Shown here in pieces: positions 49,074 through 64,000 of a stretch of 64,000 nt of DNA. Origin of the DNA: Kudoa neothunni. Taxonomy: Eukaryota; Animalia; Cnidaria. The translations under genes were made by a program, and so were the position numbers. Position 1 is the stretch's first letter, and each line of letters opens with the position of its first letter. The notes below the pieces were generated by a model. The model searched no databases and was not told the origin of the DNA. It saw only the letters and a list, made by a program, of their open reading frames with translations. The stretch is taken from the NCBI GenBank assembly GCA_964304625.1, contig OZ199838.1:11805608-11869607 (forward strand), given 5' to 3'.

Positions 49074-51397
49074 TTATTTGCTGCTTTTGATTGATAGCAC
49101 CGTTATCACTATTATGATAGCCAAGATAAACAGACTAGCTAGGACCCTATAACAACGTTATCTACCACCATGATTAATAACAGACTATTTACATCCACCA
49201 GTTGTCTTCGATCCATGTTCTAAATTGATAATTAAATATACGATATTATATTTAACGTAACACTTACGATTTTGCGGGAGCTAAAAATATAATATTAATA
49301 AACAATAGAATAAGAATGTTTAATGGTATTCCAAACATAAACAGAAAATTAATCGGCAACATGTCATTAAATTTATTGTTTGGAAAATTATAATGAGAGT
49401 AATTTAGAAAAGTTACAAGTGAGAAAAAATTTGGTTGGAAGACTGTAGAATTGAGCTTCAGCCACCACTGTATATGAAGTTGATTCACTCAACCCATAAA
49501 TAAACAAGTATGATCCACAGGAATACGAACAATCTTCTTTGCTCTCACAGCGCGCAACAATCAGATCAGCCTTGGTCCTGGGATCGGTTTTGTAAATTTT
49601 GAAATTGCACACCGTAGAAATTTCGGAATGTTGCAGATTGAATGCTAGACGTAGTTTTGTGCCATCGATCCACAGCGAGGAACTTTTTAAGGTTTCATAT
49701 TGAGACACTTAATTTTTTGTTATTTAGAATTTGAAATGAGTTTATGGATAAATATGTTAATAGATAATTACATGTAGTTGCAGCTATGTCGATGCTACTG
49801 GGTGCGTAATAATTCAATGGCTCTAGTACAATCGTGTATTTGGTTTTTGGAGTCAAAACTCCCATAAAAAATCCGTTAGAACAGAGATTAACACAAGGAA
49901 AACCAAATGAACATTGAATATTATCTAGAAACGCTTCAGTGCCTGTTTTCTTGACTTTAAGTTGACATAATGCATCCTTTATTTGAGAGTCAACTTTTAT
50001 ATTCAATTGTGCATATTGTTTGGATGGATGTATCGTATAGTCAAGTTTTGGTAGTCCCACTAAGGTTAGATGTCGATTAATTATAACGAAACTAATTAAT
50101 CACCTGTTTCGAATGATGTATATGAAAACTGGTTTTCGGTGTGTTCAACTTCAACTATGTACTTGGTTTTTGGTAGAAGATTTTCCAGTTTTAAGTCAAC
50201 ACAGGTGTTGGTGCATTTTTGCTTACCATCTTTTCCGCAAATTCTCTTTCGCCCGCTCTTCGGGTAGCCAAAATGATAGAGAGTTACTTCACATCGAGTA
50301 TTATCATCCACCTTCAACGATGACATATTCAATGTAACGGAACTTTGAGTTATTGCCGTAACCTCAATGATATTCTTATCAGCTTTATTCAGATTAATGA
50401 TTTAGAATTACTAATTTCAATTACAGTTTAGTTCTACTATGTAGGGATCCTTATCATGGCGTGTGTTTATTGATACTGTGAAAATACCATTTGCTGGACT
50501 TATTTTCATCTTGACGTGTGTACATGGTCTGAAACATTTGTTCGGAGTTGAAGTTGAATTAATAAAGCAATCTTCAACATAGTTAGAGGTAGATTTCCCT
50601 CCTTGTTTTATTTTAAATTGACATATATCGTCAGGTTTAGGATCGTGAAAATGAATAACTAGACTATCTGTTACACCGGAAGTTTTATTTAGAGAAATGG
50701 CAAATTTTCTAGGTCCTTCTGGAATCATCAACTCCGTGTTGGCGTAGTCGAAGAATACGTTCGCCTCAGACGTTCCACAGAATAACTCTAGGGGAAAATT
50801 CGACGGTCGTCTATACGTAGCCGATAGCTCGTAGTATCTCCCACAGTTAACATTAGCAGGAATACTATCCAAAACTATATGTTTATGTCTGATTTGGCAT
50901 GTTGTTGAAAACTGGCAATTTTTCTTCACTTTAAAGTAGACATTGTCTTCTATCAATTTGGGAACCACATTTGGTGGCTTGGGAAAGTCTATTTTATAAT
51001 ATTAAACTCTTATAGAAACAGAATTATATTACTGTTTTCTACATAAATATAATGTGTTGACTTTTTTGATTTAATTGACATGTAGTATGATGTTTGAGCT
51101 TTGTTAGTTTTAACCGATACTTCATCACGACAATCCACCGTACAAAATGGTAAAATTCCACATCGTACGTCTTCATATTGAGCTACGTTATCGGTTACAC
51201 TAAGTAACTTTATCGTGCATGATGTTTTTGCCGTCCCTCTCAATCTCAAGTAAATTGTGTCACTCCCAGCAATTCGTTCTACCATATACTGATGCAGACA
51301 AACTAAGAATAAGGTAGCTAAACTACGATTTAATTCAGTTATATGTACCTTGTTTGACACAAAACAATGACCATATCAACCACAACCATAGCTCCAT
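49074..51397 (-). CDS. Cys-bridged FN3-like repeat surface protein, type A copy 1 (intact)
   Basis: Signal exon MELWLWLIWSLFCVKQ; six modules (e.g. CEVTLY..ICGKDGKQKCTNTC..LLPKTKY); 13-nt micro-exon 49268-49280; TM end TWIEDNWWILFILAIIIVITVLSIKSSK*. Confidence 0.78.
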
Positions 51398-54250
51398 CGT
51401 ATTTTTTATTTAATATAAAGGGATAAAAATTCAAAGGTCTAGGATTAGATTAATACAGACTAAAGATCCTATAGATTGTAAATTTCCGGATCAATATTTA
51501 CGAAGAAGTATTATATCCATTTATTGTCGAATGATTATTTCATCGAATTCATGAAACGGTATATAATACAATTGATTGTCGGTTAGTTGGACATGAGATC
51601 TAATTTTTGGATAGCATGCAAATAATGTTTATTTTTATGTTAACTAACATTTATGTATTTAATCGAATATAACTGAAATATCATTGAACAGAATCAAAGC
51701 TTTTTTTACTTTTTTTTCTGCGAATAAAGATATATAGGGATATTTTAATATTGATTGAATATACACCGTAAATAAATATTTTTTACATTTTAAATAATAT
51801 TGAATGATAATCAATATAAATATAACGATAAACGTGACCTGCATTTTTTATATAATTATAAGTTATTAGGCAAATAAAAATTTATTTTATATAGGCTTAG
51901 ATAAAACGTGATAAATAAATCTGAATAAAATTTAATAATAAATAATAATTATCATTTCATTGAAAGTAAAATAATTATTTCGTTCAGTAGAAAGAGGAAA
52001 GCCGCTTAGTCACCAGCTCTAGTTGCTACAAAAGCCACTCCTCCAATAACCACAGCCAAAGCACCCAACACTGCGAGGATGCTAAATAAAAGAATTATGA
52101 AATTTTTAACCATATTTCACATCAAAATTACATCCACCAGTTCTTCTTCATCCAACCACTATATATAAAAAATAAATAGTTAAAATTCGTAATTTATATA
52201 ATAATTATTATTACCCAGTCCCTTGTTCTATACAAAATTATATAACAATATATAGATAACCTAATAATTTACTTCCAACTTCAATCTCTTCAATAAGTGC
52301 TGCAGATTGTCCATCGTCAGATAACAACTGATAACTGTAATTTATATCTATATCCTCAAATACAACGGAGCTTGCACAATCAATATCTTGATCAGTTGGT
52401 TTTCCTATCTTCTCAAATAAGAATTTATCCTCGGGATCTTTGGGATTGACGGCGTAGATAACCACATTACATAAATTCCCTGACTGAGTTTTGTCTGGTA
52501 TGATGGTTAATCTCCTTTCGTAACCATCAAAAATGATGTCTGGTTTTACTTTATCATTATTTTTTCCTAAAAATAACGTTATAACGTTTTCAAATCAAGA
52601 TTTAATCACTTAGCAGTCGCGACACTTGATAAACTGTGTAATCAATGTGACCAGCATGAACCAACTCGATATTTATGGTTACATTCACTGGCAAATCCAC
52701 CACTTCGAATCTGTGAGAACATAAACCCCAACATGGTTTTCCATCAGAACAGGTGGCTATTGTTTTTTTAAATCTTCTGGATCTCTTGTATCTCACGTAA
52801 CATGTCATTTTTGGAAGATACGACTCATATTCACTCCCTGCTCCTGGGATCATGAGCATTGTATCACCGAAAAAGAATGTTTGTGTCTCGCTGAATTGTA
52901 TTGTTTCTAATCATACTAAGTATTTATAATATAATATATGTATACTTGTGGCGAAAAACGAATTAACAGCATATTCAGCACTATTTTTTTCTGCTCCAAT
53001 TTTCATCTCAAGAATGTATGCTGTGTTGGGAGTCAAAAGCTTTAGCGGTGTCTTATTGTCACATGCTTCAGGGCAAGCTTCATTTCTCTCTTCCCCACAT
53101 ATCGCAGTCATTGGTAGACCGGGAAGTTTCGCGTGTACCAATGATGGAAAACACTTAGGTGAATTCTCAAGGTTTGATACTTGAAAACTAGCTGAGGTTG
53201 CTGTGATATCAGATATAGCAACAGTATTTTTTGTATCTATAAAATTCTGTAATTTATTATTTCGTTAAGGTTATACCTTTAACTTTATATTCTGCATATC
53301 CACGTCTAGTTCCAATTTTGACTGTATAATGATCTGCAGCAGCATTTTGATTAGCCAAGTTTAAAGTAGTAGCTCCACCACAGTACTTGAAACATTTATC
53401 ACTTTCGCCATTTCCAGCCTGACTACATTTTTCCGCGTATGTGCTAACACTATTACTCTTTATTTGGAAATTGCAGATCTCATTGTTCAAATATGGATTA
53501 TGCATTTGTAATGAGAAATCTGTGTGTGGAGAGGTGGATTGAGAAGAAGTAAAAGGAACATATTGGTATTTGTTATCTTTATTGTAGAAAGACTTGTTAG
53601 CGTAAAACATGACTTTAGCTTGATTAGCCCCACAGTAAGAATAATAGGCATTGGACATTGAGTATCGAATTGGTATAGTAATGTTATGTAGATTACAGCT
53701 GTTATTTTCTACTTTAGCCAAAGTTCTATCATGTTTTGTACTTTTAACTCGGCATTTATAGTTGTCAGTGCAGAAATTGTTAACTCCGAATTGCGCTTCT
53801 TCTTCACTCAATGTTACATTAGTTTCAGGAAGTCTGGGCATATCTATTGAAAAATGAGCTGAAAATTATAAGTATTATTGCTGTTTACCTGCCGGAATCG
53901 CTAATATATTTATTTTTCTTCCTTCAACAATTCTGAAATAGTGCATCAACCGTCCACTATTGACATTAATCACAACTATCTGATTACATTTCGTTTCGCA
54001 CACAGGTAGAATATTTGCTTCAGTGGTTGCTCCAGATATTTTGCATATTGTCTCATTAAATTTTGCTCTAACTCCATTTCTAAATAAATGGTCTATTTTA
54101 CAATCTTCGTTTTCGTCTCCTTTCAGATAAATTGTAATTTCGTCCATGTATGTTGAGATTTCTTGATCAACTATAGGTATATCGTCTGGATTTATTGTAG
54201 TTTCGGGAGGAGGGGTAGTGGTAATAGTTTCGGTAGCATCAATCGAGATG
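50610..54250. repeat. First copy of the tandemly duplicated A-B segment (second copy ~57908-63925, interrupted by the hAT)
   Basis: Direct sequence match at offset +7305 (A part) and +9664 (B part). ORFs 52238-52465 and 61902-62129 are identical, as are 52602-52859 and 62266-62523. Confidence 0.95.
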
Positions 54251-54673
54251 TCATTATCAGTTGGCGCGGAATCTTCATTTTCAGAATCATCGTCAGCTCC
54301 AGAATCATCTCCATTTTCAGAATCAACTTCAGTTTGAGAATTATCACCAGTTCTAGTACTATCTTCAATAACAGGATTAACATCACCAGAGTCACTTTCA
54401 GCATCAGGACTATCGGATTTCATAAATATCGGATGAATATTCGACATTAAAAGCCGGCTACTTTGAGCAGCAGTAACATCGGTATTGGGAGCTTCTTCTG
54501 CTGCTGGTTTTTCCACTACTGATGGAGGTGGTGGTGGTGGGCGTTTAATTTGTTGAACGAAATATTTGTGACAACGTGCTAAATATGAATAACAGAATTA
54601 AAAAATGACAGAAAAGCAATATATTACTAGTTGTGAGAGCTGTTAAAAATAAAAACAATATTGACAGCCTCAT
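52006..54673 (-). CDS. Cys-bridged FN3-like repeat surface protein, type B copy 1 (acidic/Pro/Thr-rich N-terminal region)
   Basis: Signal exon MRLSILFLFLTALTT; D/E/S-rich region; modules with LLTPNTAY; 13-nt micro-exon 52215-52227; TM end GWMKKNWWIILAVLGALAVVIGGVAFVATRAGD*. Confidence 0.78.
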
Positions 54674-54817: not shown

Positions 54818-57800
54818 GGCAGTGTCTATTTTGCCGGACGCGCTTTTTCTCTTAAAATAATAATTCAATCGCTACAATTTTTTCCAAAAAATATCTTTTA
54901 TAAATGCAGAATATAAATTTAGTTTCATTTATCTTTTAATTAATAATTAGGTATCAAAATACATCGAGGATATTTTAAACTCATTCATAAGTATCATTAT
55001 AAATGACATTAAATTTTTTATAAATCTGTATTATTTACATAATTAATTTAATTTTATGTGTAACAGAATCATAAACGAGTAAAATACCCTCTAGCGTGCG
55101 GTTGTAACTTTGATAGTCGCGAGTAGAATCACTATGGAAGGAGAGTCTGATCAAACACTACTAATTCAGGATATTACATCAGGCCCTAAGGTCGGAAATG
55201 CATTTACAAACTTTGAAAAGGCTAAAAAAATCATGGATAAGTACTCAAAGCGGAACAACCTTTGTTACTGGGTCCGAGACTCTAGAAAAATCTCAACTGC
55301 CCTAAAAAAATTTGATAGAGACATGAACTCTGATCTTGTTTATTATGAAGCCACTTTTTGTTGTGTTCATGGTGGTAAAAATGTAATTATCTATATAAAA
55401 ATTGATGTAATTAATTTGAATTCAGATACAATCTAAAAGTTCTGGAAAGAGAAAAATCAACAGCCATAAAAGTGGTTGCAATTTCTTCATTACACTGCGA
55501 GTTCCTAAAAACATGAATATGTTAGTTATTAGAAAATTGGATCATACTCACAGCTGCAACAGAAATGAGCATTTTAGGAATTTTTTACCAATGAATAGAA
55601 AATTAGATGAAGAAAGCAAGAATCTTATAAAAAATGTTCATTTTTATGATGGAAATTTAAAAAGAGTACAAGTAGAAATCATGAACCAATCACAAAAAAA
55701 GGTTTCGTTGAAGCAAATCCATAATTATATTCAAACACTAAAAAAATGTTTCGTTGGATATTTCGGAATTGTTTAATTCAATAAAAAAATTCTTACCCAA
55801 ATGCAACTATCGAAATATTGCACAATAACTCCAATGAAATGACTGGAATATTTTTCCAAGACCTTTATATGAAAAATGTTATTAAAAAATTCCCCGAATT
55901 AGTATTTATGGATGCTACTTATAAATTAATCAATAATCGTATCCCATTGTATATAAGTCTGTTTATCGATTCTTTTGAGCAAAGCCAAATAGGAGCTATT
56001 GCTCTTTTATCTGAGGAGAGTACCGTGACTGTTACCTGGTTATGTCAATCTCTACTTAAACATAACGAGGAAATGTCAACCAAAACAGTTTGTTTCATTA
56101 CGGATAAAGACATAATTGAAAGAAACTCTATGAGATCTGTATTTCCTAACGTAAGTACAAACTTATGCCTGTACCGTGTCTTAAGAACATTTGGTAGAGA
56201 AATCTCTACTTTAAGAATGAGAATAAACAAAGCTGAAAGAAAAGCTGCCTTAGAGTTGATTCAAAAGCTTTGTTATACCGATGATCCAAAAATTTATGAA
56301 AATTACCATGAATTGTTAAATAAGACATGTAACAAAAAATCATTAGTTATTATAATAAATCTTGGGATCCAATCAAATATGAATGGTGCCCGGCATACAT
56401 GAACCTAAAGGGTACTTTTTAAATGAAACCAATAATCGATTAGAATGCATAAATTCCAAAGTTAAACAAATCTTAAAAAAATTATCAACAATTGAAGTCT
56501 TTTTCAGCGATCTACTTATTTATTTATCAAGTATGAGGACTGAGCGTGAGAGTAAAGCAGTTAAAGAGTTTACAACCCAAAATGTTGAGAAATTAAATTC
56601 GGACATTAACGGACGATATAAAACATTGTTACCTTCATATGCGTATAATATTATGCAGAATGAAATAAATAATTATATCGAACCCTATACCAATCCTGAT
56701 CCCAATAGTTGTACATGTTATTTCTACGTAAGTATGGAGTTGCCATGTAGGCATATTATTTACGCTAGAAAAATAATGAACATGAATTTATATGACGAGA
56801 AAATTTGTAATAAGAGGTGGCACAAAGAATATTACCTGTCATTTATTCAAATGACCAAAAATTTATATCTTCAAAATCCTTCGTGTTGTGTGCAACCAAG
56901 TATTACAGAAATTTAGAGTCAGTGACCTGTTCCGAATTCTGCTTTTAAGCGATACAGGGAGCTAGAAATTCTTTGTAAGAAAATAGCTTCGCTAGGGTCT
57001 GAAAAAACAGGGAGTCAATATGATTCATTAAAAAAGATTTTAGGTGAATTAATCTCTCTTATTTCCAATGGGGATTCTCTGGATAAGGTGACTATTTTTT
57101 CCACTATTCATATATCAACTTAATTTAGTTCAAGTTAATGTCTGAATCTGTCATCATAAACAATCAAGAGATTTCAATCCCAACATGTAATTAATGATAT
57201 TGTCTTTAGTAGAATTTTTATTTCGTGTTTAGTTACTGAGGAATCACGATTAGAGAATGAGGATATACTAGAAGCAGTTAATGATAATGCTCCATCATCA
57301 ATAATTGATATGGAGATCCCGAATATTGTAGATGATACCACAACTAAAAATCCATCTTTGAAGGGTGTGTATCTTTTGTCCATTTTGCTAAATTCATAAA
57401 ATTATAGGAATTAAGCTGCCAACAGTAGTGAAATTGAGAGGTAGACCAAAAGGTGTATTTCAAACAGTTATTGGTTTAAGAAAAAAAAGAAAATTATAAT
57501 TATGATAATAATAAACACCAGTATCGATATATAGTATTCAAATATAGTTTTACGTGGATGTTAAACAGTCCCAATTATTTGGCGTTGCATTACAAGATAA
57601 TTTCAAACATTTATTATTTAAAAGCAGTATACTCAACATTTTATTAAATTTTAGTAGTGTATCAATCATCTGTTAAAAACATTTACCTAATTATAAAAAT
57701 TTTAAATACGAATTGGCCAAATAGTTTTACTTTACTGTATTTTCATTTGGATATTATGGATACAAATTAGCTATGTTAAAATTCGTCACTGAATTAATGA

Positions 57801-57907
57801 AACTAAATTTATATTCTGCATTTATAAAAGATATTTTTTGGAAAAAATTGTAGCGATTGAATTATTATTTTAAGAGAAAAAGCGCGTCCGGCAAAATAGA
57901 CACTGCC
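54818..57907 (+). mobile_element. Mutator-like element (MULE), full length
   Basis: 112-bp TIRs GGCAGTGTCTATTTTGCCGGACGCGC... (54818-54929 and 57796-57907); 9-bp TSD TTTTTTAAT (54809-54817, 57908-57916). Confidence 0.95.
55134..57499 (+). pseudogene. MULE transposase (ZSWIM3-like; DDE, SWIM finger, AT-hook), intron-containing and frameshifted
   Basis: FMDATYK, FITDKD, ETNNRLE; SWIM CTC..LPCRH; C-terminal KLRGRPKG. Frame breaks near 55750-55820 and 56340. The CxxH motif reads CLYR. Confidence 0.8.
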
Positions 57908-58702
57908 TTTTTTAATTTTAAATTGGCATATATCATCAAGGTTAGGATCGTGAAAATGAATAACTAGACTATTAGGTTTATCGGAAGTTTTATGAAGGGA
58001 AATGGCAAATTTCCTAGGTCCTTCTGGAATCATCAACTCCGTGTTGGCGTAGTCGAAGAATACGTTTGCCTCAGACGTTCCACAATATAACTCTAGGAGA
58101 AAATTTGACGGTCGTCGATATGTAGCCGATAACTCGTAGTATCTCCCACAGTTAACATTAGCAGGAATACTATCCAAAACTATATGTTTATGTCTGATTT
58201 GGCATGTTGTTGAAAACTGACAGTTTTTCTTCACTTTAAAGTAGACATTGTCTTCTATCAATTTGGGAACCACATTTGGTGGCTTGGGAAAGTCTATTTT
58301 ATAATATTAAACTCTTATAGAAACAGAATTATATTACTGTTTTCTACATAAATATAATGTGTTGACTTTTTTGATTTAATTAACATGTAGTATGATGTTT
58401 GAGCTTTGTTAGTTTTAACCAATACTTAATCACGACAATCCACCGTACAAAATGGTAAAATTCCACATCGTACGTCTTCATATTGAGCTACGTTATCGGT
58501 TACACTAAGCAACTTTATTGTGCATGACGTTTTTGCCGTCCCTCTCAATCTCAAGTAAATTGTGTCACTCCCAGCAATTCGTTCTACCATATACTGATGC
58601 AGACAAACTAAGAATAAGGTAGCTAAACTACGATTTAATTCAGTTATATGTACCTTGTTTGACACAAAACAATGACCATATCAACCACAACCATAGCTCC
58701 AT
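57908..58702 (-). pseudogene. Type A surface-protein gene copy 2, 5' fragment
   Basis: Matches A1 at offset +7305; GAA>TAA nonsense at 58426-58428; cut by the MULE in module 3. Confidence 0.85.
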
Positions 58703-58783: not shown

Positions 58784-61073
58784 CAGTGGCTCTTAACCTG
58801 GGTTCGATGAAAAAATTCCTAATATTAGATCACATTTAGGATTAATATTCTTTATAATTTTAATATTTTAAATAAACCTTCTATTGGTTGTCTTTATAAT
58901 CCTGATTAGGAGCTCAATTAAAAAGATAATAATGATCACTTAAAAAATTATGGATAATTTAGCTAAAATTATTATTTGAGCATTTGAAATTCTTTTCGAT
59001 TTATCTGATTAGTACAATCACGTGTAACTGGTTACAGAGTTTACTTCGCGTCAGTGTTATTTACTTGCTAATTTTGTGAGGGTTACTGGAAATAAACATT
59101 GGCACTTTGAATGTTTAACCAAAAAAGAAAGTGATCAATTGATTTTGTACAGTTCGGTTTTACCTATGTAACGGAACTTAATTGTATTCAACGACCTCTT
59201 TGCATGATATGCAACTCGAAGTTAAGTAATTCTAGTTTGGTACCGGCGAAACTAAAAGAGCATTTTACAATTGTCCATGGAGACTCTGCATATAGGAATA
59301 TGACTCTTTCCGAACTTGGAGCAAAGAGAGTAAGATATGACGTAAGATCTACTTTGCAAAATTTTTGATTTGTTAATATCGATAAGCCTATCTTAACAGT
59401 AACATATGAAGTTTCATATCGCATTGGAAAACAAGGTGAACCTCACAATATTAGTGAAACGCTCGTTAAAGCTGTCGCGTTGAAGATGGCAAATATTTTA
59501 TTGGGAAGTATTGCAGAAAAAAAATTAGCACAAATTCCTTTGTCAAATGATACCGTTAAGAAAAGAATTGATGATATGATTAAAGATATTTTGGATCAAT
59601 TATTTTCTGATCTAATTTCATGTAAAGCAAAGTTTAGTATACAATTTGAAGAAACTGCTGATATATCAAACCTAAGTCAACTGGTTTCGTTTGTTAGATA
59701 TTTGAAAAATGGTGTTATTGTTGAATATTTTCTTTTTTGCAAACCTTTAACAACAACTGCCAAGGCAGTGGATGTTAAGAAAGTTGTCGATGAGTTTTTC
59801 AAAGACAATGGGCTTTCATGGAATATGGTTTCTTCTTTTTGCACTGATAGTGCCCAAGCTATGCTGGAGCGTAACTCTGGTTTTTGTGCTCTTGTGAAAG
59901 CAGATGCACCTCATATTATTGTTATGCATTGCATTTTACATTGATATGCATTAGCAACAAAGAATATGTCTCCAAGGTTGGCAGAAGTGTTGAAAATCGT
60001 GATAGATTGTGTAAATTTTGTGAGACGTAATGCTTTGAACCATCGAATTTTTAAATATTGCTGCAAAGAAATGGATTCTGAGTTTGAATTACTTTTGTTT
60101 TATTAAAATGTGAGGTGGCTGTCTCGAGGGAAGTATTAAACCGCGTTTTCACTCTGCGAAAGGAAATGGGTATATTTTTGCTGGAATGTAACCATTGCCA
60201 TGCACAATGTTTCAATAATTTGGAATTTAATCTTCTTTTGGTATACATGGCTGATATTTTTGATTCCATAAACTGTTTGAACCTGCAGATGAAAGTAAAT
60301 GGAGTCAAAATCATTGAGGCAGAGATGCATCTTAGTGCATTCCAAATAAAATAATCTTTATACAAACGAAGAATAATGGTCGACAATTATGCAAACTTTC
60401 CACGTTTAGACGATATTTGTAATATTAATGGCGACGGTAACAACGAATTGATCATTTTACCTTTTGCATTAAGGGAAATAATTACTGCAAATTTAAAAGA
60501 ACTTTCTAACTCACTCGATGGCTATTTCCCTTCTAAAAATTCATTCCCCGGCTGGGTGAGGCAGCCATTTAGCTGAGGATGCCAATAATAAATATCTTGA
60601 TGAGCTAATCGAACTTCAACACAACACAATTCAAAAACAACTTTTCGAAAAAGTTTCACCATCAATCTTTTGGATAAATCAAATTGAGAAATATCCTGCA
60701 ATTTCGATGAAAGCATGGAAGTTTTTATTCCTTTCGTAATAACTTATCTTTGCGAACAATCATTTTCAAGATTGGTCACCATGAAAACTAAATTAAGAAA
60801 TAAGCTTTTCTGTGAAAACGATATGCGAATTGCTCTCTCCAGCATTTTGCCTCGTATTGTGGATTTGGTTGCAAAAAAACAAGAACAAAAATCGCACTAA
60901 TTGGATTTATATTAATTTTATTTATACGTTTTGCAATTTTTATGATGTGCAAAATAATGATTAAATTGTAATTCATTTTATTTAAAATTTAAAAAATTTT
61001 ATGTTTGAGGTTCGACGAGGCGTGCTATAGGGTAATAGTGGTTCGGCGACTCTCAAAATGTTGAGAACCACTG
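58784..61073 (+). mobile_element. hAT transposon, Buster/Charlie (ZBED5/SCAND3/FAM200-like) type, with decayed transposase
   Basis: TIRs CAGTGGCTCTTAAC / GTTGAGAACCACTG; 8-bp TSD CTATAGAT (58776-58783, 61074-61081). Transposase motifs IPLSNDTVKKRI, FCTDSAQAM, HCILH, TYLCEQSFS and KQEQKSH, with stops and frameshifts. Confidence 0.95.
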
Positions 61074-61669
61074 CTATAGATTGTAAATTTCCGGATCAAT
61101 ATTTACGAAGGAGTATTATATCCATTTATTGTCGAATGATTATCTCATCGAATTCATAAAACGGTATATAATACAATTGACGAACGATTAGTTCGGCATG
61201 AGATCTAATTTTTGGATAGCATGCAAACGGTGTTTATTTTTTTGTTAACTAACATTTTATATATTTAATTAAATATAACTAAAATATCATTGGATCGAAT
61301 AAAAGCTTTTTTAATATTTTTTATATAATTAAGAATATATAAGGATTCTCATAATATTGATTGCATATATATCGAAAATAAATTCGAAATTTTTATGAAT
61401 AACCATGTTAAAAATTTTTGGAAAACAAGTAAATAAATATTTTTTACATTTCGAATAATGATTAATTAATAAAAACATAAATATAACGATAAACGTGATC
61501 AGCATGATTTTTTATATAATCATAATTCATCTGGCAAATAAAAATTTATTTTATATAGGCTTAGATAAAACGTGATAAATAAATCTGAATAAAATTTAAT
61601 AATAAATAATAATTATCATTTCATTGAAAGTAAAATAATTATTTCGTTCAGTAGAAAGAGGAAAGCCGC

Positions 61670-64000
61670 TTAGTCACCAGCTCTAGTTGCTACAAAAGCC
61701 ACTCCTCCAATAACCACAGCCAAAGCACCCAACACTGCGAGGATGCTAAATAAAAGAATTATGAAATTTTTAACCATATTTCACATCAAAATTACATCCA
61801 CCAGTTCTTCTTCATCCAACCACTATATATAAAAAATAAATAGTTAAAATTCGTAATTTATATAATAATTATTATTACCCAGTCCCTTGTTCTATACAAA
61901 ATTATATAACAATATATAGATAACCTAATAACTTACTTCCAACTTCAATCTCTTCAATAAGTGCTGCAGATTGTCCATCGTCAGATAACAACTGATAACT
62001 GTAATTTATATCTATATCCTCAAATACAACGGAGCTTGCACAATCAATATCTTGATCAGTTGGTTTTCCTATCTTCTCAAATAAGAATTTATCCTCGGGA
62101 TCTTTGGGATTGACGGCGTAGATAACCACATTACATAAATTCCCTGACTGAGTTTTGTCTGGTATGATGGTTAATCTCCTTTCGTAACCATCAAAAATGA
62201 TGTCTGGTTTTACTTTATCATTATTTTTTCCTAAAAATAACGTTATAACGTTTTCAAATCAAGATTTAATCACTTAGCAGTCGCGACACTTGATAAACTG
62301 TGTAATCAATGTGACCAGCATGAACCAACTCGATATTTATGGTTACATTCACTGGCAAATCCACCACTTCGAATCTGTGAGAACATAAACCCCAACATGG
62401 TTTTCCATCAGAACAGGTGGCTATTGTTTTTTTAAATCTTCTGGATCTCTTGTATCTCACGTAACATGTCATTTTTGGAAGATACGACTCATATTCACTC
62501 CCTGCTCCTGGGATCATGAGCATTGTATCACCGAAAAAGAATGTTTGTGTCTCGCTGAATTGTATTGTTTCTAATCATACTAAGTATTTATAATATAATA
62601 TATGTATACTTGTGGCGAAAAACGAATTAACAGCATATTCAGCACTATTTTTTTCTGCTCCAATTTTCATCTCAAGAATGTATGCTGTGTTGGGAGTCAA
62701 AAGCTTTAGCGGTGTCTTATTGTCACATGCTTCAGGGCAAGCTTCATTTCTCTCTTCCCCACATATCGCAGTCATTGGTAAACCAGGTAGATTCGCGTGT
62801 ACCAATGATGGAAAACACTTTGGTGTATTCTCAAGGTTTGATACTTGAAAACTAGCTGAGGTTGTTGTGATGTCAGATAACGTAACAGTATTTTTTGTAT
62901 CTATAAAATATCGTAATTTATAATTTAGTTAAGCTTATACCTTTAATTTTATATTCTGCATATCCATGTCTAGTTCCAATTTTGACGGTATAATCAGCAT
63001 TAAGAGCACTATCTTGCCCATCCACGACCAATGTGGTGGCTCCACCACAGTACTTGAAACATTTGTCATTGACAGTACTTCCAGTCTGACTACATTTATC
63101 CTTAAAATCATTGCCAGTATCTTTAATTTTGAAATTGCATATCTCATTGTTCAAATATGGATTATGCATTTGTAATGAGAAATCTGTGTGTGGAGAGGTG
63201 GATTGAGAAGAAGTAAAAGGAACATATTGGTATTTGTTATCTTTATTGTAGAAAGACTTGTTAGCGTAAAACATGACTTTAGCTTGATTAGCCCCACAGT
63301 AAGAATAATAGGCATTGGACATTGAGTATCGAATTGGTATAGTAATGTTATGTAGATTACAGCTGTTATTTTCTACTTTAGCCAAAGTTCTATCATGTTT
63401 TGTACTTTTAACTCGGCATTTATAGTTGTCAGTGCAGAAATTGTTAACTCCGAATTGCGCCTCTTCTTCACTTAATGTTACATTAGTTTCCGGAAGTCTT
63501 GGCATATCTATTAAAGAATAAGCTTAAAATTATAGGTAATACTATTATTTACCTGCTGGAATCGCTAATATATTAATTTTTCTTCCTTCGACAATTCTGA
63601 AATAGTGCATCAATCGCCCACTATTGACATTAATCACAACTATCTGATTACATTTCGTTTCGCACACAGGTAGAATGTTTGCTTCAGTGGTTGCTCCAGA
63701 TATTTTGCATATTGTCTCATTAAATTTTGCTCTAACTCCATTTCTAAATAAATGGTCTATTTTACAATCTTCATTTTCGTCTCCTTTCAGATAAATTGTA
63801 ACTTCGTCCATGTATGTTGAGATTTCTTGATCAACTATAGGTATATCGTCTGGATTTATTGTAGTTTCGGGAGGAGGGGTAGTGGTAATAGTTTCGGTAG
63901 CATCAATCGAGATGTCACTATCAGTTGAAATGTCACTATCAGTTGAATTGTCACCCTCAGTTTCAGAATCATCTTTAATTTCTGGATTATCTTCAACCTC
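61670..64000 (-). CDS. Cys-bridged FN3-like repeat surface protein, type B copy 2 (5' end beyond the window)
   Basis: Matches B1 at offset +9664 with the same exon structure; no disruption seen within the window. Confidence 0.8.

Follow-up and report, generated by a model that had tools for sequence, protein, structure and literature searches.

A recurrent divergence island in one module of tandem Kudoa neothunni genes homogenised by gene conversion

We analysed a 64,000-nucleotide stretch of the genome of the myxozoan Kudoa neothunni (C1:11805608-11869607, hereafter the window), which carries two tandem genes, B1 (52009..54673) and B2 (61673..64000), both on the minus strand. Comparison of the two genes revealed that interlocus gene conversion has recently made most of their sequence identical, and that a block of about 360 bp, which includes the loops of a single module (module 3), has been left diverged. 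Silent sites and an intron within this block are as diverged as its replacement sites, indicating an old segment, and an island of the same kind recurs at the same module in other neighbouring pairs of the gene family. The most probable explanation, to which we assign a probability of roughly 0.65, would be a divergence peak that persists under concerted evolution, with conversions that make neighbours alike being removed by selection and the limit that mismatch sets on conversion reinforcing the effect.

B1 and B2 were compared both ungapped and after alignment with MAFFT; coordinates are those of the window, and the features of both genes are read on the minus strand. The copies differ at 73 columns between 53117-53476 in B1 and 62781-63140 in B2, including two 3-bp indels that are both in frame. 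On one side of this island, the tract at 51869-53116 (versus 61533-62780) contains one difference in 1248 bp, and spans the remainder of exon 4, exons 5 and 6, the transmembrane exon, their introns and the 3’ end. The sole difference, at 52268, lies at donor position +5 of the intron following exon 6. On the other side, the tract at 53477-53796 (versus 63141-63460), which spans the N-terminal part of module 3 and most of module 2, contains no difference in 320 bp among B1, B2 and a third copy, B3. A preliminary description of this DNA had reported near-identity over about 51870-53115 versus 61534-62779 with one intronic difference, identity over 53481-53796 versus 63145-63460, and heavy divergence in between. 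All three observations were confirmed, the divergence remaining non-uniform after alignment, and the block peptides quoted for the two copies are correct.

The block had also been described as differing in frame, which holds for the indels, but it is not one coding stretch. It comprises the 3’ end of exon 3 (53277-53476, 200 nt, 25% nucleotide difference), the whole of intron 3 (53276-53237, 40 nt, GT..AG, phase 1, 15% different) and the start of exon 4 (53117-53236, 120 nt, the first 40 codons, at the start of module 4, 9% different), the last with 11 differences, about 5 of them replacements. Exon 3 (53843-53277) encodes modules 2 and 3, and its 53277-53476 portion corresponds to the C-terminal two thirds of the FN3-like module 3, with hypervariable loops 1-3 and a small FG turn sitting between invariant Cys and framework residues. 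The hyper-diverged core is confined to 53330-53476, where ungapped identity falls to about 40-50%. The term ‘otherwise near-identical’, applied earlier to the two copies, fits the two perfect tracts and not the rest: B1 and B2 are 87% identical over 51469-51868 and about 95% identical over 53797-54263, and their second introns differ by 22%. Since the copies differ by 5-13% outside the perfect tracts, these tracts are as striking as the block itself, and the anomaly is the identical flanks.

Site patterns were next scored on an alignment of the four tandem copies B1-B4. B1 and B2 agree over 51870-53116; at 53117-53127, B1 matches B3 and B2 matches B4; B2 is unique at 53157-53219; B1 is unique at 53246-53437, where B2 and B3 are identical and B4 is close; all four copies differ at 53438-53476; B1, B2 and B3 agree over 53477-53796; and B1 is again unique at 53797-53911. 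A GENECONV-like permutation test on the four copies, in which 247 polymorphic columns were shuffled 2000 times, returned p<0.0005 for two B1/B2 runs (71 and 39 sites) and two B2/B3 runs (52 and 32 sites), and p=0.0025 for a third B1/B2 run, of 25 sites, at 53482-53665. These runs exclude chance as the origin of the B1/B2 mosaic, showing that neighbouring copies swap sequence by interlocus gene conversion and that most of B1 and B2 was recently made identical in this way, introns included. Segmental gene conversion, proposed earlier for the block, is thus strongly supported, but mainly as the cause of the identical flanks, the block being the residue of that process. Conversion affecting the block was seen between B2 and the pseudogene B3, which are 100% identical over the stretch equivalent to 53239-53437, and nowhere else.

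The B2/B3 identity indicates that blocks are transferable, and the island could in principle have been pasted in from another family member by short-tract ectopic conversion, in the manner of VSG, var or vlsE. A locus on another chromosome (L011, C2:2.903 Mb) also fits such transfer, being 93-98% identical to B1-B3 over 53477-53620, in the N-terminal part of module 3 right beside the island, and 65-87% identical elsewhere, a pattern that suggests inter-chromosomal conversion adjoining the island. A genomic search for a donor of the B1 block, however, returned best matches of 84% within the array and 74% outside it, and no near-identical second copy of the block in the genome. In a tree of the block, the nearest relative of each gene is its own neighbour, at 75-79% identity, which together with the ceiling of 84% argues against import from a distant archive. 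No sign was seen of an expression site, of archive organisation or of repeats at the island boundaries, whose position also shifts from pair to pair; we regard cassette import as very unlikely. Archive-based antigenic variation of the VSG, var or vlsE type found no support in the same search, as matches of at most 74% outside and 84% within the array provide no silent donor.

The age of the island was assessed from replacement and silent counts for B1/B2 and for three phylogenetically independent neighbour pairs summed together. In the framework codons of the B1/B2 block, the proportion of differing silent sites (pS) is 0.43 and that of differing replacement sites (pN) 0.02, against a pS of 0.08 in module 2. 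Summed over the three pairs, the block framework has a pS of 0.31 versus 0.03 in module 2, with a framework dN/dS of 0.10, while loop dN/dS is 1.06-1.09 (Fisher p=0.76). Across all 78 pairs of 13 intact copies, loop dN/dS is 0.80 versus 0.10-0.14 for the frameworks. Silent sites and intron in the block are about ten-fold more diverged than their counterparts in the flanks, and divergence at the silent sites and in intron 3 reaches that of the replacement sites, which makes the block old and not newly diversified. It is an old segment, with loops either relaxed or diversified on a constrained scaffold. Judged from the codon counts, the framework is shown to be under purifying selection.

These results bear directly on the possibility that B1 and B2 are recent duplicates that underwent rapid diversifying selection, or targeted hypermutation limited to the block. 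The flanks, 100% identical with their introns, and the clustering of amino-acid changes in the inter-Cys loops are what such a history would produce. Rapid amino-acid diversification after a recent duplication would, however, leave the silent sites of the block as similar as those of the flanks, and instead block pS is 0.31-0.43 and intron 3 is 15-42% diverged. In addition, the substitution spectrum in the block is unbiased, with transitions about as frequent as transversions and every base type affected; a truly recent pair (L043/L044, described below) has no island; and B1 and B2 differ by 5-13% beyond the perfect tracts. Already disfavoured by the silent sites, recent diversification is in our estimation barely credible. 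A diversity-generating retroelement or comparable targeted hypermutation was likewise rejected, on finding no near-identical second block, substitutions of all types, and indels in frame.

B1 and B2 belong to a subfamily of about 16 copies with 70-84% nucleotide identity, distributed over three chromosomes (17 DNA matches), within a wider superfamily with at least 48 protein matches for exon 3. Other neighbouring pairs of this family were found to carry an island at the same place. L012/L014 (C1, 14.27 Mb) are identical throughout except at the equivalent of B1 53064-53539, and L013/L016 (C1, 11.02 Mb) are identical except at the equivalent of 53214-53582. In both pairs, intron 3 is 35-42% different and intron 2, 370 bp away, 0-2.4% different. 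The fourth pair, L040/L042 (C1, 6.04 Mb), comes from a subfamily whose protein identity is only about 25%, and the island of this pair again lies within module 3, with 39 differences in 225 bp versus 5 in about 1900 bp of flank, an island pS of 0.35 and a dN/dS of 0.32. The boundaries of the islands vary by 50-150 bp between pairs. Windows that are equally variable between clusters (around 52878, 53028 and 53971) are 97-100% identical within all three subfamily pairs, and within-pair identity correlates with between-cluster conservation with a Spearman coefficient of 0.56. The recurrence at one module favours some protection of the module-3 loops.

One further pair, L043/L044 (C2:8.182 and 8.197 Mb, 15.6 kb apart), is 100% identical over 3.5 kb and lacks an island, so very young duplicates do not show one. 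This pair represents either a very recent segmental duplication or residual duplication in the assembly. L038/L043 was considered as an additional island pair and not counted, its divergence being broad with no clean island.

We also examined whether B1 and B2 might be two haplotypes of one gene placed in tandem by the assembly, which would turn the block into allelic hyper-polymorphism. The source assembly is of low coverage and contained haplotypic duplication that required purging (PMC12239612), and an extra B1-type variant of loop 3, absent from the assembly, is present in reads. In contrast, the sequence from B1 to B2 in the window is ungapped; their units differ structurally, with a MULE-type element at the truncated copy A2 and a 2.3-kb hAT-like insertion; their non-converted parts are 5-13% different; and there are four B copies and about 16 subfamily copies in all. 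In Logan contigs from one sample, the B1 block was found exactly (53273-53394, 0 mismatches), and B1-type and B2-type blocks were both present, each connected to the shared right flank. The block itself does not look misassembled, and we give an artefact of this kind next to no weight.

The loop-3 variant was found in a Logan contig that is identical to B1 over 53365-53506, and differs in loop 3 by four substitutions and one extra codon. Within about 30 nt (53330-53364) these amount to 2 amino-acid changes, 1 extra codon and 2 silent changes, followed by 140 nt identical to B1. Allowing up to 2 mismatches, no match to the variant was found in the assembly. The variant could represent another allele, another parasite genotype or a copy left out of the assembly, and as a sign of loop polymorphism it is a thin hint. 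A loose contig end at 53476 was discarded as a blend of two contigs.

Taken together, the best reading is that the island is maintained by selection for distinct loops, by the limit that mismatch sets on conversion, or by the two combined. Interlocus gene conversion homogenises neighbouring copies and erases their other differences, and this homogenisation has long not crossed the 360-bp block. In the mechanism we propose, selection would eliminate conversions that made the module-3 loops of neighbours alike, leaving each copy with a binding surface of its own, and the island would be reinforced by the inability of heteroduplexes to extend through 25-50% mismatch. The process would amount to standard germ-line concerted evolution around a protected peak of divergence, and not a programmed switching or hypermutation device. 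Two features of the model of concerted evolution with a selected peak (Innan and Teshima) were observed, namely statistically supported conversion tracts between paralogues (p<0.0005) and, in four pairs, a local divergence peak that includes silent sites and is bounded by low-divergence flanks. A divergence peak between converting duplicates has been described as the signature of sites where a difference is maintained (PMC3924837), and theory and precedent for such peaks under gene conversion are also given in PMC3728101.

A purely neutral island would share much of this mechanism. Unconstrained loops would drift fast, and once about 200 bp had passed the mismatch tolerance of recombination, conversion tracts would stop crossing them; divergence, that of the hitch-hiking intron 3 included, would then accumulate in a clock-like manner with no selection for diversity. 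Loop dN/dS close to 1 is what neutrality expects, boundaries that differ by 50-150 bp between pairs indicate no fixed signal, the correlation of within-pair identity with between-cluster conservation is in the expected direction, and conversion rate is reported to drop as divergence rises (PMC3924837). On the other hand, homogenisation is complete in all three pairs at the equally variable windows elsewhere in the genes, an island occupies the same module even in a subfamily just 25% identical, and the in-frame indels and intact Cys framework imply that the loops are still selected to remain part of a folded domain. We consider a neutral origin possible, if on balance unlikely.

Several points weigh against a peak protected by selection. 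Loop dN/dS is not above 1, so positive selection is not demonstrated; the loop alignments are uncertain and the silent sites near saturation. Co-location of the islands by random placement has p=0.12 for three islands and about 0.02 for four, a modest significance. The linkage of the block to both flanks comes from the assembly and from short Logan contigs of a single sample, possibly the one behind the assembly. Finally, relaxed loops with mismatch-limited conversion, under neutrality, fit most of the data. Of the earlier suggestions on selection, diversifying selection on the block was not borne out, with loop dN/dS near 1 and silent sites and intron 3 equally diverged. The suggestion that one exposed domain is kept different gained indirect support from the same-place island in four independent neighbour pairs.

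To place the island on the protein, searches and structure predictions were run per exon on unspliced exon products. B1 and B2 are tandem paralogues in what sequence features identify as a large lineage-specific family of predicted type I membrane proteins, which have a signal peptide at the N-terminus, a series of beta-sandwich modules that contain Cys, and a single transmembrane helix close to the C-terminus. The exon 3 model consists of two beta-sandwiches, with a predicted local distance difference test score (pLDDT) of 63.6 overall and 70-83 in module 3. In Foldseek it matched best to FN3 domains paired in tandem, among them the cytokine-binding region of gp130 and the FNIII domains of sDscam (E about 1e-4). 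Module 3 modelled alone with AlphaFold2 reached a pLDDT of 80 and a predicted template modelling score of 0.70, and in Foldseek gave a weak match to FN3/Ig-like domains (template modelling score about 0.5, E 0.004-0.05). A Pfam scan of nine exon products returned no family and no fn3 (PF00041) at E<=1, the only sub-threshold matches being the Fn3-like DUF5581 and Pur_ac_phosph_N; the FN3 resemblance is at the predicted fold level only.

The hypervariable segments correspond to exon 3 residues 129-137, 142-147, 161-171 and 180-183, joined family-wide by 98-107. When mapped on the predicted structure, all of them fall between predicted strands of module 3, loop 2 being the least confident part of the model. 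From strand order, the loops would occupy the BC, CC’, EF and FG positions of an FN3 domain. Cys123, Cys139, Cys150 and Cys154 of exon 3 are invariant, and the earlier statement that cysteines are kept while loops change agrees with the invariance of Cys139, Cys150 and Cys154 in 24 family members.

A word-indexed protein search with exon 3 found one 64%-identical fragment in an ENA metagenome, and a profile search of 1.84 billion representatives gave 17 hits, mostly short unnamed fragments together with starfish ‘cubilin-like’ repeats. The exon 3 profile matches two of these starfish proteins in 8-14 repeated stretches (E 7e-25 and 5e-13), covering only profile positions 31-88, in module 2; the match may reflect either a remote relationship of the module or a Cys pattern in common. 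A PDB sequence search with a profile gave nothing meaningful, and the best score in a feature-based search of the ESM Atlas, 0.79, was below the useful range. We found no paper describing the family, and the K. neothunni genome paper (PMC12239612) contains neither ‘gene famil’ nor ‘surface’.

The pattern of a divergence peak under gene conversion matches one already known from opsins, RH genes and protocadherins, the cases discussed in PMC3924837 being exon 5 of the human red/green opsins, RHD/RHCE and the protocadherins. As in the opsin and RH genes, tandem paralogues are homogenised with their introns and a short island stays diverged. There, however, the peak concerns a few tuning residues, whereas the Kudoa island covers whole beta-sandwich loops and is found again in several pairs, independent of one another, within a large family, with dN/dS not above 1. 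The clustered protocadherins are similar in being tandem receptor-type paralogues in which conversion homogenises some parts and the specificity-determining parts of the ectodomain stay diverse. In these genes the membrane-proximal parts are homogenised by conversion, and constant exons are shared via splicing. Their variable exons are reportedly a precedent described by Noonan et al. 2004, as cited in PMC3924837. They differ from the Kudoa genes in having cadherin repeats and spliced shared constant exons, while each Kudoa gene is complete with FN3-like modules, and no homology of the Kudoa family to protocadherins was detected.

Variant antigens and the Hydractinia Alr allorecognition proteins had been offered earlier as comparisons, and stand as analogies only; neither a donor archive nor a switching apparatus turned up, nor any homology. 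Like the VSG, var and Giardia VSP families, the Kudoa family is large and lineage-specific, with single-pass, Cys-containing predicted surface proteins, variable loops and recombining copies; unlike in those families, conversion in Kudoa acts mostly to homogenise, rather than to diversify. The Pfam scan gave no relation to the VSG, var or VSP families, and no sequence relation to them was found. VSP-like and RIFIN/STEVOR-like genes have been reported in another myxozoan, Sphaerospora molnari (bioRxiv 10.64898/2026.02.11.705288). The Alr genes likewise form a cnidarian complex, and encode paralogous single-pass receptors in which a single domain on the extracellular side is hypervariable. Its variation is allelic and shown in populations, whereas that in Kudoa is between paralogues, with the one thin allele hint described above. 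No relation to Alr was found, the Foldseek fold matches being generally FN3/Ig-like.

Myxozoans are economically important fish parasites, and to our knowledge almost none of their host-interaction molecules are known. The module-3 loops may be the specificity surface of a parasite receptor or antigen family, on which balancing or diversifying selection actively keeps neighbouring genes, and perhaps alleles too, different, a proposal that we put forward tentatively and consider rather doubtful. If it holds, each Kudoa genome would carry a protected repertoire of binding or antigenic types on a homogenised scaffold, a cnidarian-parasite counterpart of protocadherin-like or allorecognition-like diversity, and the read contig with a second B1-type loop 3 would be a first glimpse of allelic hyper-polymorphism. 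The recurrent sharp island marks the module-3 loops as the part of the protein whose diversity would matter most, and gives population-level sequencing, antibodies and binding assays a definite region to aim at. In the K. neothunni genome, duplicates that are near-identical apart from one hypervariable block should be interpreted as concerted evolution around an old segment, and not as recent hyper-diversification. The present analysis adds evidence from silent sites and an intron that the island is old, and shows that it reappears in the same module of independent pairs.

The K. neothunni assembly was obtained from HiFi and Arima data from Thunnus albacares and comprises 40.2 Mb in three chromosomes, with low GC and a median intron of 49 bp (PMC12239612); the genome analysed here has 40.26 Mb in 4 contigs. 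The window has a GC content of 31%, and its introns are short and of the GT-AG type. In the B1 gene model, built from exon models and open reading frames (ORFs), the start codon lies at 54673, in an exon whose hydrophobic N-terminus was judged by inspection to be a signal peptide. Exon 2 encodes an acidic low-complexity region and module 1, exons 4, 5 and 6 encode one module apiece, and the transmembrane exon, also judged by inspection, corresponds to the ORF at 52009-52116. B2 has the same exon set, its exon 2 extending past the window end to 64291 in window-equivalent coordinates. Intron 2 of B1 (53844-53888) has two in-frame candidate acceptors, giving an intron of 30 or 45 nt with the exon start at 53858 or 53843, and adding or removing five residues at the junction of modules 1 and 2.

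The array runs in the order A1 (49695-51360), B1, a MULE element, truncated A2 (57902-58665), hAT-like remnants and B2, with B3 and B4 past the window. B3 (window-equivalent 74669-76714) is a pseudogene, its exons 3, 4 and 5 being frameshifted, and adjoins a scaffold gap of 200 N. The MULE-type DNA transposon lies between B1 and A2 at 54818-57907; its 115-bp terminal inverted repeats (54818-54932 versus 57793-57907) share 99% identity, and plus-strand ORFs in its interior match ZSWIM3_N, ZSWIM1-3 RNaseH-like/MULE and SWIM domains. Its right end meets the break point of truncated A2 (57902-57906). The 2.3-kb insertion in the B2 unit relative to the B1 unit spans 58784-61073 and contains broken ORFs (59204-60900) with a weak match to DUF4371, which is hAT-family-like.

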